A DNA stretch of 64,000 nucleotides from Selaginella moellendorffii (taxonomy: Eukaryota > Plantae > Lycopodiophyta): positions 373,036 through 437,035 of the forward strand of contig NW_003314337.1 in NCBI RefSeq assembly GCF_000143415.4, read 5' to 3'. Shown here piece by piece: positions 10,190-19,968 of the stretch; positions within the stretch are counted from its first letter, which is position 1, and every line of letters starts with the position of its first letter. The notes beneath the pieces were generated by a model. The model did no database searches. It was not told the DNA's origin and saw only the letters and a program-made list of their open reading frames with translations. The position numbers and the translations under genes were made by a program.

Positions 10190-11215
10190 CTACCTTTGCC
10201 ACCATGAGGAACAAGTGACAGCTGGTCTTGATGGACAGACATGTGTTCCGCTGGAAGATTTGTTGGTAAAAGCAGTTATGACTCGCAGCCCGATCCACTG
10301 TAGAGCCAAAATACCAGCAATCGCTAGAGTCTGCCATTTGGACACTGTCGCCGAAGGCTGCTGCTGCTGCTGCATGTCCTGCGGCGGCTCGAAGGCGTTG
10401 GAAGAATTTGTCAGTGCTAGGCCCAGGCTGCCCACTGATATGACTCCACTTGGAGCCTCATCCATTGCCTGGAACTCGATAGCGTGAGGCTCGGCCTGGC
10501 ACACTGCAAAAGTTCCCGATGAGAATTTGAAACTAGATAGCAATATCAAGAATGCACCGCTGGATGATGCAGGCATTGAAGCACGAAGTTAGGAGATCAT
10601 GATTCAAGAGATTGCAATCCCACCATCTTTGTAGAATGAAACTACCAACGATGCAGACAGCGAAAATGGCAGAGAGACTGCCGAAGCTACTGTTAATCAT
10701 CGATGCTATCAACAAAGAGAAAAAGCTTGCTAGAAACTAAGAAAGCACCACCTTCAATGAATAGGATGACAGGCATTTGGAATGCATGGAAAAGAAGAGA
10801 ACTTTACCTCCGAGAGGACTATCAGCGGAAGAGCAATTGACATCGAGGCAGTAGGGACCCGGCTTGAGGCCTGTGAAGACGAGCGTCGCGCTAGGTTGGA
10901 ATTCCCGGACAACGTTTTCGAAATCGCTGGCATTGTAGAAAAGAAACACACGGCACGATGCCTTGCACTCGTCATCCGCGATCGCGATCGAGACCGTGTA
11001 CACTGCCTGCGGGAACTCCAACTCTACGGGCAACACGAAATATTTCAGCGTTACAAGCAAAAGATGCGAAGAAAGAGCGCTTCACTCTCGTAATCTTGCG
11101 CGCGGCCGGAGCGCCACACCTGATCACAAGCTACATTCTCAAGACATCATCCGATCTTCCCGCTGCGTACCAGAGAAACAACGAGAAAGGCCGCCATCGC
11201 CATCGTCATGGCCAT
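10190..11215 (-). CDS. Orphan putative secreted/single-pass protein with an Ig-like beta-sandwich motif; 3' structure uncertain
   Basis: Spliced model MAMTMAMAAFLVVSL|VWRSGRAQDYE|LEFPQAVYTVSI..TLVFTGLKPGPYCLDVNC; downstream hydrophobic WQTLAIAGILALQWIGL; TTAGGGTT upstream of the ATG. Confidence 0.55.
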
Positions 11216-11293
11216 CGAAGAAAGCAAGATTAGGGTTCTTGAGTAAACAAAGAACTTCTTTCTATTTAGCGAAGAGCAAAGTGCGCTCGATTG

Positions 11294-12040
11294 TCAATCA
11301 TCGTCGGAATCATACTTACCATACTTGTTCCTCATCCGCATGAAATCCTTGGGGTAGCCGCTGCGCTCCGCCTCCTCCTCCGCTAGCCTCTTCGTGCTCT
11401 TGAGCACCGCCTTCATGTCCACCACCGCGTACACCTTCTTGGGATCCAACTCCGCGAGCTCGCGGGTGATGTTCCCCGGCTCGTCCGGAAGCATCACTCC
11501 AAACGCACTTGCCTTGTCAAGCATGCTCTCGAACTCCTTCTGGTTCTGGAATTTGAGCTGCATCGCGCGACCCAAGCTTACCAGCGTGATGGGCACATTC
11601 TTGTTGTCAAATCTGGGCTTGGGCGGTGGCGGCGGTGGCGGCGGCGGAGGAACGTAGTACTCTTGCTGCTGCTGCTCCTGCTGGGATTGATAGGGAGGAG
11701 GAGACGAGTACTCGGCGTCGTAGATCGGTCCTCCGGGAGAGTAATCTTCGTAGGAATTGTTGCTTGGATCGGTGAAGTCCTCCGCTTCGGCGTAATCCTC
11801 TCCTCCCTGGGGCGCAAAGCCCTGGCCGCCTTGATCGGAACCCTGTCCCTGAGAAGAAAAATTCCCCTGGCCTTGAAATCCCTGGCCCTGGGGAGATGGA
11901 GCGCCTTCAGGAGGAGGAGGGGCCGTAAATCCTTGGCCCTGAGCAGCCGCATTGCAATATCCTGCCTGGAATCGCTTGGCCACCGCCAATCCCGTCGCCC
12001 GCCGCCGCAACAGCGCCCTCGCCAAGCCCCCAATCGCCAT
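11294..12040 (-). CDS. Intronless, probably mitochondrion-targeted protein of unknown function (paralogue A): presequence, Q/G/P low-complexity linker, ~105-aa C-terminal domain
   Basis: 248-aa ATG ORF; Arg/Ala/Leu-rich, acid-free N-terminus; C-terminal domain homologous to 12142..12573. Confidence 0.85.
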   Translation of the reverse strand: MAIGGLARALLRRRATGLAVAKRFQAGYCNAAAQGQGFTAPPPPEGAPSPQGQGFQGQGNFSSQGQGSDQGGQGFAPQGGEDYAEAEDFTDPSNNSYEDYSPGGPIYDAEYSSPPPYQSQQEQQQQEYYVPPPPPPPPPPKPRFDNKNVPITLVSLGRAMQLKFQNQKEFESMLDKASAFGVMLPDEPGNITRELAELDPKKVYAVVDMKAVLKSTKRLAEEEAERSGYPKDFMRMRNKYGKYDSDDD

Positions 12041-12141
12041 AGCTCGGTAGAACCCTAAACCCTGAACCCCACCATTTTACGCCGAATTTGGGTTCGAATC
12101 CACCGCCGTGATGGATTGGATTAGGGCATTCGTGATCGGCG
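12041..12141. promoter_or_regulatory. 101-bp bidirectional spacer with telo-box motifs, a CCAAT box on the minus strand and a B-box-like GGTTCGAATCC
   Basis: AACCCTAAACCCT at 12051-12063; TTAGGG at 12121; ATTGG at ~12115; GGTTCGAATCC at 12091-12101. Confidence 0.7.
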
Positions 12142-12573
12142 ATGGCGCTCCTGCTGAAGAATCTATGGCGGCACAGAGATCTGGGTCGCTCCTCGCTCGA
12201 CTCCAGGTGCCTGCTGCTCGCGGCAGCTAAGAATTTCGCGACGGATTCCTCGTGGCCAGTGTTTGACAACAAGAATGTAGTGCTCTCGTTTCTAGACAGG
12301 GGAAGGATGCTCAAGCTGCGGTTCCAGGATCAAGAGGAGTTCCAGATGTTCTTGGAGAGGGCGAATGCGGTGGGCGCGACTCCGCCGGACGAGCCGAATT
12401 GCATCACCAGCAAGCTGTGCGAGTTGGATCCGCGGCGAATCCATGTGTTGGTGGACAGTAAGATTGTGAGCAAATACGCAAAGAAGCTCGCGAGGGAGAA
12501 GGCCGAGAAGCAAGGCTGCCCTTCGGACTTTGTTACATTCCTGGACAAGGACTACAAGGTCGACGATGATTGA
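12142..12573 (+). CDS. Intronless, probably organelle (mitochondrion)-targeted protein of unknown function (paralogue B)
   Basis: 143-aa ATG ORF; FDNKNV..GR..L.FQ.Q.EF..PDEP..IT..L.ELDP domain shared with paralogue A. Confidence 0.85.
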   Translation: MALLLKNLWRHRDLGRSSLDSRCLLLAAAKNFATDSSWPVFDNKNVVLSFLDRGRMLKLRFQDQEEFQMFLERANAVGATPPDEPNCITSKLCELDPRRIHVLVDSKIVSKYAKKLAREKAEKQGCPSDFVTFLDKDYKVDDD

Positions 12574-13268
12574 AAGGTTTGTTCTCAAGGTTTTTGGATA
12601 TAATGAGGAGTTGTGTACTACATTTTAACCAATGATCAAAGCAATGCAACCCCTTTGGTTGCATTAGGGCATAACATCCGTACCAAATGGTCCAAATTCG
12701 TGTACGGCAAACTGGGGCTACTTAGTTGTGTGCTTCTTTAGTTCTTATTTTCCAAACGTTGGCGTGACTTTGGCGCAGCGCCTTGGCTTCGTCGCGGCGC
12801 AATCCCTAGGAGGATGGGGAGGAGGAGCAACGCGATGTCGATCGAGCGACAACGTCGCAAACTTTAGTTTGATGCCCAGGTATTCCTGTAGAGTAACTAG
12901 GGATAGGTTGCTGGAAGCATCGCTCGCTAGATCAGGGCGCCCCGACTTAATCCTGGTAAGTTTTTTCCAAATTTTCAATGCCAGGGAATTCTTGCTTGCG
13001 TGCCTTGGGTTGTGTGTGTGATCGTAAGTCCTGCCTGAGACGGAATTTGCAGTGCTGCAAAACTTAAGAAATTCTGGATTTTGTTTTCTTCTTTCTTTTT
13101 CTCGCTTGCTTTTTAGGTTTGTGAGTTCTTCCGAGACGCATGCAAGTGCTTTTGCTTTGTCAGTTTTTGTTCCTTGGTTTTCTTCTTTCGTTCGTTCTTT
13201 TCTTTTTTTCGTCCGAGAAAAGCTGTTTATCTTCCCTTTGTTTTTTTTTTCTTTCTCAGAGTGGTTTT

Positions 13269-13368
13269 NNNNNNNNNNNNNNNNNNNNNNNNNNNNNNNN
13301 NNNNNNNNNNNNNNNNNNNNNNNNNNNNNNNNNNNNNNNNNNNNNNNNNNNNNNNNNNNNNNNNNNNN
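13269..13368. other. Assembly gap (100 N)
   Basis: Run of N. Confidence 1.
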
Positions 13369-15166
13369 CGTTCAACTGGATGCTTCCAGGCCCGAGAAAA
13401 GGGCCCGCTGTGACGAGTGGTCGTTTGCCGAGACCTCCAACCCAAGCAGAGATGGAGAGGCAGCACCTCAAGGAGCCCTTCCTTCGTCGCCTCGGTTGGA
13501 ACAGCAGCCGCTAGACACGGATCGTCCCGAAGACAAAAGCTTCGAGAAGGAAAAGTCCTGTGAACAAGATGGAGACGAGTGCCGGACGTCCAAAGAGAAA
13601 GAAACTCCGGCGGAAGCGGCTGCGGACCAGAAGAGCTTGCGACACTTTTCGAGGGCGAGGCAACCAAAAGCTCGGGTATCAGCCGCCGAGGCTTCTGCTC
13701 CTCAACAGGGTGCAGAGAACCCTTCGGATGCGTCGTCAACTTCTCTAGAAAACAACAACGTCCACAAGGAAGCGAAGAACAGGAGATACGATTTGAGACA
13801 CTCTTACGTTGATATTTACCAGATCCCGGAAGAGTTACGCTGCTTCGTGGATGAGGAGGAGGAGGAGGAGGAACTTCCGGATAAAAAGGCCAAGATCCGG
13901 AGGAGGAGCAGGCAGGAGAAATCATCGAAAACTCGGTTGAACAAGGATAAGGTGGAAATGATCGAGGAGTGCCTGAATTTCATGGAACAGATGGGACTTT
14001 TCAAGAGCAGTGTTTTGGTGGAAGAGAGCTCCGTAGTGGCTGTCCATCCGGGGAGCGTTGGCGATGGAAGTGCTACCGCCGAGAACTGTAGAGTTTGTGG
14101 ACGGCCCGGGAATGCAAACTCAACACTGGTATGTGATACGTGCGAGGAGACGTATCATCTCTCCTGCTGCTACCCGAGGATCAGAAGCGTGCCAAGAGAT
14201 GATCGCTGGCTCTGCAGCTTTTGCACGAGGAAACGCAAGAAGAAGACAGCCGAGCTGAAGATATTCCCGGCGGGACATTTTGAAGAGAAGCTTCCTGCAG
14301 CTTGGAAGATCGACAAGACTAAAGTTCGTGGCTGGGACTTGCAGCGCATGGAGAGAACTCAAGTTCGTGTTGGAGATGAGTTTCAGGCAGTTGTTCCGGA
14401 ATGGTGTGGCAAAGTTTCGTACGAGGATGTGTAAGTTCTCTCCGGTTTCCTTTTTTTTCCGGTCTTTAACGTATGGTTTTTCTTGTGCAGTCGACCAGAT
14501 TATCCAGGTCTTGAGGCTCCTCGCAGTCTGGCGGAGAAATTAAAAGAGAAAGACCAGGCCGAGCAAACTGTTGCTGCTGTAAGCTACTACTCTTTTTTTT
14601 TATTCTTTGCTGATGTTCTTTCTATCACCAGAATATTTGGCCCATGGGATGGATACCAGCTAGGAGCTTGCCTGAAAACGAACGAGAAAACTGGGTGCAA
14701 TGCCAAAACATCATCTATGAAGAGGGCGATTATCTTCCAAGCGGAGAAGTGGCAAACAAGGACATAGTTTGCGGCAAATGGCGAAGGTATTCTCTCATGC
14801 AAAAAGCTCTGTAAGTTACGTGAGATATCTTTTTTTCCTTTCCAGGGCTCCTTTACACATTGTCGCCGATGATGGATGGGAATGTTCGTGCGCTGTTGCA
14901 TGGGATCCTCGTCACGCTGATTGTGCGGTACCACAGGTCTGAAAGCTCATTCTAAGACATTCCAGAGTTTTGTGTTGATAGTTCTCTCTCGTGTAGGAAA
15001 TCCCCACTGAAGAGATCAGAAAGAGACCGAAAGCTCGAATGCAATCTCCTGGCGAGGTAAAAATTCCCGGAAAAATGTAGCGATTGTTCTTAGTTGCTTC
15101 TGGCAGGAATGGAAAAACTCGGGAAGACGAGGCAGAGCAAACCAAAACATGACAGAGTTGTATTGA
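13369..15166 (+). CDS. PHD finger + ELM2 + CW-like zinc-finger chromatin protein; 5' end hidden by the gap
   Basis: CRVC..CDTC..YHLSC..WLCSFC (PHD); QVRVGDEFQAVVPEW (ELM2); NWVQC..CGKWRR|AP..WECSCAVAWDP.HADC. Confidence 0.85.
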
Positions 15167-15673
15167 TTTTCGCACGTAAGTGTCGTTCACCATCGTGCTT
15201 GATCGATCTCGATTATTTTCTCTTAAGTTTGTAAAGGAAGAGGATTTTTGTTTGTCTTCTTCCCTTCACGATGGTTTGGGAAGGAAGAAAAGAATGGACA
15301 AAGATACATCATCTGGAATCCAACGGCTAGGATTGGGCTATTTTTTGGACTATGCTGCTATAACAAGGAGCTGAGCGACCTAATGTGAATGGAAGAGGAG
15401 GCGAGCGCCGGGACGACACTGCCGCCGCGGCCGCCGCTCCTCGAGGTAATCGCCAAGACCGTCCTCCCCAGCGCCGGCATTTGGAAATCTCTCCTGGAAT
15501 CGGCAAGAAAGTGGAGCTGAGAGATCCGTTGCGGCGGGGCGGATTTTTGAGCTCCCGGGGATGCTTCTCTTGGAATTCACGGTTTCTCGGGGCCGGGAAG
15601 CGAGATTCTAGGGCTGGGGCGAGCTAGGAATGCGGATCAGCTCCTCCCGGTGATTGCTCTCTCGTCGCTAGCA

Positions 15674-19929: not shown

Positions 19930-19968
19930 CGAGGAACCCTAAAATCCTAGAGAAGTGAAATTAGGGCG
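19930..19968. promoter_or_regulatory. 39-bp ATG-to-ATG divergent spacer with opposed telo-box-like motifs
   Basis: AACCCTAA at 19935 and TTAGGG at 19961. Confidence 0.65.

Follow-up and report, generated by a model that had tools for sequence, protein, structure and literature searches.

A head-to-head pair of expressed paralogous genes in Selaginella moellendorffii belongs to an apparently Selaginella-restricted family

A stretch of 64,000 nucleotides from the lycophyte Selaginella moellendorffii (NCBI RefSeq assembly GCF_000143415.4, contig NW_003314337.1, positions 373,036 to 437,035 of the forward strand) was analyzed. The whole stretch is called the window, and positions are counted from its first letter. 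It contains two short genes, A and B, which diverge from a small spacer and encode related proteins, and the question raised by this locus is what these proteins are. A preliminary description, made by a model from the sequence without database searches, presented them as probably mitochondrial paralogs with an unrecognized domain and called the pair the best candidate in the window for a new system. What it had observed was confirmed in every detail. Our verdict is that the pair is a real but ordinary taxonomically restricted orphan family. As to function, the explanation we prefer is that A and B are small imported proteins whose conserved domain is a protein-binding module, and we put the probability of this explanation as a whole at about 40%.

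Gene A lies on the minus strand (11294-12040) and encodes 248 amino acids plus a stop codon, and gene B lies on the plus strand (12142-12573) and encodes 143 amino acids plus a stop codon. Both genes are intronless and are arranged head-to-head, with their start codons separated by 101 bp (12041-12141). This layout, as previously described, was borne out by the coordinates of the open reading frames (ORFs) and by collinear RNA contigs. The contigs came from four RNA runs of four different studies and were mapped onto positions 10600 to 15600 of the window. A lack of expression of one gene had been named beforehand as evidence against the pair, and both genes were found to be covered collinearly with the genome, without splicing, in all four runs. 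The A contigs spanned 11285/11293-12053 and the B contigs spanned 12115-12664 without any joint, with 3′ ends at 12577-12664. A repeat of 77 nt (11613-11689) was skipped by the mapping tool but was present in the RNA contigs and, thus, there is no intron in gene A. The neighboring PHD-finger gene appears in these contigs with five GT..AG introns removed, and contig depth was zero between genes, as in the bins 10600-10766 and 13105-13271. Therefore, the contigs represent RNA and not genomic DNA.

In run X5, A and B were found on separate contigs, the A contig ending at 12053 and the B contig starting at 12115, with 61 nt between them. In the other runs, a single contig bridged the two genes; for contigs, such bridging is not evidence of one transcript. 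A and B are separately transcribed nuclear genes. The spacer holds both 5′ leaders and, presumably, a bidirectional promoter region that A and B would share. The shared promoter suggested earlier fits the closely spaced contig ends of run X5.

The two proteins are related through a conserved C-terminal domain of approximately 105 amino acids, which is also found in a third paralog, C. BLASTP aligned residues 142-246 of A with residues 39-143 of B without gaps; 49 of the 105 positions were identical (47%), with 69% positives and an expectation value (E) of 1e-32. The domain was assigned to residues 138-248 of A (11297-11629, minus strand), given the BLASTP match to B and 52% identity to paralog C, and to residues 35-143 of B (12244-12570, plus strand), given the BLASTP match to A and the substitution rates. 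When identities were recounted over the ungapped C-terminal stretch chosen in the preliminary description, the same 45 of 92 were obtained. Both proteins terminate in DDD, also as described. Among the paralogs, the ratio of nonsynonymous to synonymous substitution rates (dN/dS) of the domain was 0.28-0.37, with dS at 1.1-1.9. The ratio was 0.36-0.37 for the A domain, and for the B domain it was 0.36 against A and 0.28 against C. With both ORFs intact and true paralogy established, A and B are old duplicates retained under purifying selection, which agrees with the earlier proposal of an old inverted duplicate that was kept intact.

The head-to-head layout recurs in the second haplotype (GL377577.1). 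The surrounding region is 97.4% identical overall between the haplotypes, and the spacer is identical except for a 1-nt indel. Protein B is 100% identical in the second haplotype, its gene showing one synonymous difference, and the protein sequence of the A domain is identical in both. All the amino acid differences in A fall in the linker ahead of the domain and consist of three substitutions and two indels (one lost Pro and one 3-residue insertion). RNA contigs of different runs carry either A allele, as can be seen, for example, at the 3-nt indel at 11909. Protein A is on record letter-for-letter (GCA_000143415.2, scaffold GL377641.1, from which the window is taken). The public annotation of gene A is that of an uncharacterized protein only, with an allele listed as XP_024530226.1 / LOC112346171 (P0007), and a literature search with the public identifiers found no papers.

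The range of the family was examined by exhaustively searching 1.84 billion representative proteins, bacterial, viral, and metagenomic ones included, with a HMMER profile. Six proteins were found, namely A, paralog C, and four long repetitive proteins. Paralog C (P0002; SELMODRAFT_438182 / D8QUU1) is encoded on S. moellendorffii scaffold GL377567.1, and its domain has 52% identity to that of A and 41% to that of B. The public model of C has 310 amino acids, a doubtful intron, and an odd Cys-rich N-terminus. At the locus itself, one ORF runs without interruption (L002 6283-7179 on GL377567.1) and contains Met codons in frame, which are followed by an acid-free presequence-like sequence, an acidic Q/Y/D/E-rich linker, and the domain. 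This ORF would make C an intronless gene like A and B. As read from the predicted proteins, A and C are the long forms of the family and B is its only short form.

When 5.8 billion protein clusters were searched by word index with B, the A domain, and the family profile, only A itself was returned. Annotated bryophyte, fern, and seed-plant proteomes are present in the searched databases, but lycophytes are sparsely represented. For this reason, "Selaginella-only" is to be read as an absence of detectable relatives elsewhere, and absence from other lycophytes is not proven. From these searches, the three-member family is apparently restricted to Selaginella. It was traced within S. moellendorffii only and, thus, looks like a lineage-restricted orphan family and not the new system for which the pair had been put forward.

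The domain was called unrecognized in the preliminary description, and it stayed so: there was no match in Pfam, among PDB sequences, or in the ESM Atlas, and paralog C was its only relative among the 1.84 billion representatives. B and C had no Pfam-A match at all. The only Pfam listing for A was Mito_fiss_reg, which was rejected because its 11.7 bits fell short of the cut-off of 26.3 and it matched the proline run. No match was accepted from searches of PDB sequences, whether the query was a single protein or a profile of four sequences. The best profile match (E 0.045) was to HPt/YPD1; it covered a 63-residue stretch (yeast YPD1 85-148) with the rest of the chain unmatched and was attributed to chance.

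The four long HMMER matches were rejected as well. Local re-scoring showed that their whole-protein E-values were inflated by summing over repeats. Three of them (P0003, P0005, and P0006) are multi-PAS proteins with 8-19 near-identical repeats, each scoring -3 to 15 bits, and the fourth is a tandem-repeat protein scoring 4.4 bits per repeat. In every repeat of the multi-PAS proteins, a likeness to the family is seen over profile positions 3-46, consisting of P-x-[FY]-D, a hairpin with a G turn, and an amphipathic helix. However, these matches are confined to the last hairpin and the linker helix between domains and leave out the five-stranded core of the PAS fold, and no PAS domain was found with Pfam.

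In the explanation we prefer, the basic N-termini would be targeting presequences that direct import into an organelle, most likely the mitochondrion. Residues 1-33 of A (11942-12040, minus strand) and residues 1-34 of B (12142-12243, plus strand) are presequence-like by composition, with B being the weaker case. The first 35 residues of A contain 6 K+R, no D+E, and 14 A+L, and the maximum helical hydrophobic moment of the A N-terminus is 1.83 compared to a shuffle mean of 1.46. The first 35 residues of B contain 6 K+R and 14 A+L as well, together with 3 D+E (D13, D20, and D35). The presequence-like character noted earlier for both proteins is thus present, with acidic residues in B. In all three paralogs, an acid-poor basic leader precedes an otherwise acidic protein.

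Within the pair, only A has a linker, as had been stated. It covers residues 34-137 (11630-11941, minus strand) and is, therefore, approximately 104 residues long, close to the earlier estimate of about 110. This acidic low-complexity segment is Q/G/P/Y-rich, with 18 Q, 16 G, 20 P, 8 Y, no K/R, and a net charge of -14, and its C-terminal end is the proline run. The charge of the domain is near neutral, at +1 and -2. Neither a catalytic motif nor a Cys/His pattern is seen in the predicted mature A and B proteins, which are hydrophilic.

The domain is predicted to be a compact alpha/beta unit with the order beta-hairpin, helix, short strand or loop, helix, strand, long charged helix, and acidic DDD tail. 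It would probably act as a protein-binding module, such as that of an accessory subunit or an assembly/adaptor factor, and could possibly pair with its paralogs. A and C, the long forms, would carry in addition a disordered acidic arm of fast-evolving sequence with much Q, G, P, and Y; the short form B lacks this arm. The feature-similarity neighbors of the A domain in the ESM Atlas were counted in favor of this explanation since they are small mitochondrial subunits: the plant ATP synthase 24-kDa subunit, subunit h, MRP-63, and mL31. They score only 0.58, and the threshold for a lead is 0.9. The ATP synthase 24-kDa/FAd-type accessory subunits (PF15704), the top neighbors of the A domain, resemble A and B in that they are small and nuclear-encoded, begin with a basic presequence-like stretch, and are otherwise hydrophilic and rich in helices. 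However, in addition to the low score, no PF15704 match was found in Pfam even at E up to 1, and neither A nor B matched any solved chain, so membership in this family is unsupported.

Several points weigh against imported proteins with a binding module. Mitochondrial import is plausible on N-terminal composition alone, and in B three acidic residues go together with a hydrophobic moment no higher than that of shuffled sequence. The ESM neighbors are far below a useful score and are different for each paralog, being cytosolic PH-domain proteins for B (0.70) and phage DUF7841 for C (0.40), and the ESM Atlas contains no structure model for the family. AlphaFold2 gave no confident fold with alignments of two and four sequences (mean predicted local distance difference test score, pLDDT, of 52 and 44; predicted template modeling score, pTM, of 0.33 for the better model) and, thus, the compact alpha/beta binding module stands for predicted secondary structure only. 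No partner resembling B lies within 6 kb of paralog C. Pairing is therefore not a general feature of the family, and the head-to-head layout is specific to the A/B locus and does not define it. Contig depth is a poor measure of co-expression. Lastly, the restriction to Selaginella may merely reflect the small number of annotated lycophyte proteomes in the databases.

The alternative that survives best is that A and B are not organellar, and are instead cytosolic or nuclear lineage-specific proteins whose basic N-termini are ordinary and whose Q/G/P/Y arm is generic low-complexity or condensate-type sequence. The compositional basis of the targeting argument leaves room for this, as do D13, D20, and D35 and the amphipathicity of the B N-terminus, which is not above the shuffle mean. 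It is harder to reconcile with A, which has six basic residues, no acidic residue, and an above-shuffle moment in the corresponding region, and with the retention of an acid-poor basic leader ahead of an acidic remainder in all three paralogs. The cytosolic PH-domain neighbors of B would also suit such proteins, but this lead is below the usefulness threshold of the tool, no PH domain was found by Pfam, and A and C do not have PH neighbors; membership in the PH family was rejected. A non-organellar location is possible, if doubtful.

Another possible explanation is that the family is a fast-evolving and unrecognizably diverged branch of a known small fold, for instance a ubiquitin-like or PB1 beta-grasp with a C-terminal helix. 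This would not be exclusive of imported proteins with a binding module. The order of elements in the low-confidence model (pLDDT 52) is beta, beta, alpha, (beta), alpha, beta, long charged helix, and short helix, which is compatible with the beta-grasp suggested in the preliminary description. Over approximately the first 60 residues of the domain, this is the same predicted order as in ubiquitin-like and PB1 domains, and SUMO, ubiquitin, NEDD8, ISG15, PB1, FERM-F1, and PI3K-gamma chains made up many of the top 50 weak Foldseek matches of the better model in the PDB. The PI3K-gamma chains contain a Ras-binding domain, and the region aligned in them was unchecked. However, none of the PDB matches was significant (best E 0.5, probability at most 0.13, all TM-scores at most 0.36, compared to the 0.5 of a confident superposition), and the best beta-grasp matches had E of 1.4-4 and TM-scores of 0.22-0.36 with a model that is itself unreliable at this pLDDT and pTM. 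The matches among AFDB clusters were different, consisting of ZapA and uncharacterized proteins, and were equally weak. The family also has approximately 40 extra residues, forming the predicted C-terminal helices and acidic tail, which the ubiquitin-like and PB1 domains do not have. A diverged beta-grasp is possible but not likely.

A bolder idea is that the domain would be a new fold of lycophyte-specific mitochondrial proteins and that A or C would assemble with B into an undescribed accessory module of a mitochondrial machine. The machine could be an oxidative phosphorylation complex, the mitoribosome, or the Selaginella apparatus for PPR-based RNA editing, which is unusually large. The preliminary description had similarly taken A for the long and B for the short subunit of a mitochondrial complex not described before, and nothing was found that supports a new complex. 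We regard this idea as quite improbable.

It has also been suggested that A and B are linked to RNA processing, and in its strongest form this explanation makes them organellar RNA-processing or editing helpers that replace the MORF/RIP cofactors missing from lycophytes. MORF proteins are small and presequence-bearing, with a box of approximately 100 amino acids and several paralogs that form homo- and heteromers. The A/B/C family resembles them in its small proteins with presequence-like N-termini, its one conserved box of about 100 amino acids, and its several paralogs. The published record provides context only: in a survey of 364 Archaeplastida genomes, more PPR genes were counted in S. 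moellendorffii than in any other (PMC13386178), and the introduction of the same paper, citing earlier work, places MORF genes in seed plants only. Ferns are added by a newer paper (PMC12561531); going by these two papers, reports of MORF cover seed plants and some ferns but no lycophytes. However, no similarity to MORF, RRM, OZ, or any RNA-binding family was found in Pfam for the family, and membership in MORF/RIP was rejected since the MORF box was unmatched in A, B, and C. The near-neutral domain and strongly acidic linker are unfavorable for RNA binding and argue against nucleic acid binding in general. The link to RNA processing or editing thus found no support, and editing helpers are very improbable.

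The remaining alternative concerns gene B itself. In the JGI v1 models of both haplotypes, the PHD-finger gene begins at Met56 of B (window position 12307), which fuses the B domain to that gene; in the extracted loci, the fused models are at L001 1-2734 and L003 2873-5735. The RNA contigs give the PHD-finger gene a separate 5′ exon (12771/12822-12955), which is joined by splicing to 13369 across an assembly gap of 100 N (13269-13368). No exact record of the 143-amino-acid B product was found in the public protein collection searched; B is missing from the public protein sets searched because the JGI model fuses it to its neighbor. That B is a decaying duplicate, or just the first exon of the PHD-finger gene, is barely credible despite these models and the missing record, given that RNA contigs pass unspliced through the B stop codon with no joint leaving B, that the PHD-finger gene has a separate 5′ exon, and that the B ORF is intact, with a protein identical between haplotypes and a dN/dS of 0.28-0.36 against its paralogs.

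Other features of the locus were noted. A telo-box-like AACCCTAA is present in the spacer at 12051-12058, and the other strand has CCCTAA at 12121-12126. In the window, AACCCTAA occurs 10 times compared to 1.9 expected, and none of 100 shuffles reached 10. The sites are at 12051-12058, 11230-11237, 19935-19942, 28471, 31651, 34127, 39133, 44723, 60408, and 60422. Gene A is flanked by two of these copies, one in the A/B spacer and the other beyond the A stop codon, ahead of the point at which the next minus-strand gene model starts. There was no enrichment of the plain hexamer CCCTAA in the window. Telo-boxes mark housekeeping-type promoters in plants, and the copy in the A/B spacer is a weak and non-specific hint of such a promoter. 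The spacer also contains the start of an upstream ORF on the plus strand (12111-12230), with an ATG at 12111 and 39 codons, which is out of frame and overlaps the B start codon. Since the B contig of run X5 starts at 12115, this ATG may fall outside the mRNA.

The gene next downstream of A is on the minus strand at approximately 10190-11197. Its spliced model encodes 196 or 204 amino acids, depending on the haplotype, and no Pfam family was found for two long ORF pieces of it (10193-10576 and 10740-11060). RNA contigs covered this gene at low depth in one of the four runs (X2), in which a CT..AC joint at 11023/11086 corresponds to a GT..AG intron on the minus strand.

These findings correct the annotation, as B is a stand-alone gene and not part of the PHD-finger gene as in the JGI models. 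They also provide a well-documented taxonomically restricted gene family with three old, constrained, and expressed paralogs. Such families are common in plant genomes, so the value of this one is modest as it stands. Little work has been done on the proteome of the Selaginella mitochondrion, an organelle noted for its extreme RNA editing and the unusual character of its genome. If A, B, and C are mitochondrial, they would be candidate lineage-specific components of Selaginella mitochondria.
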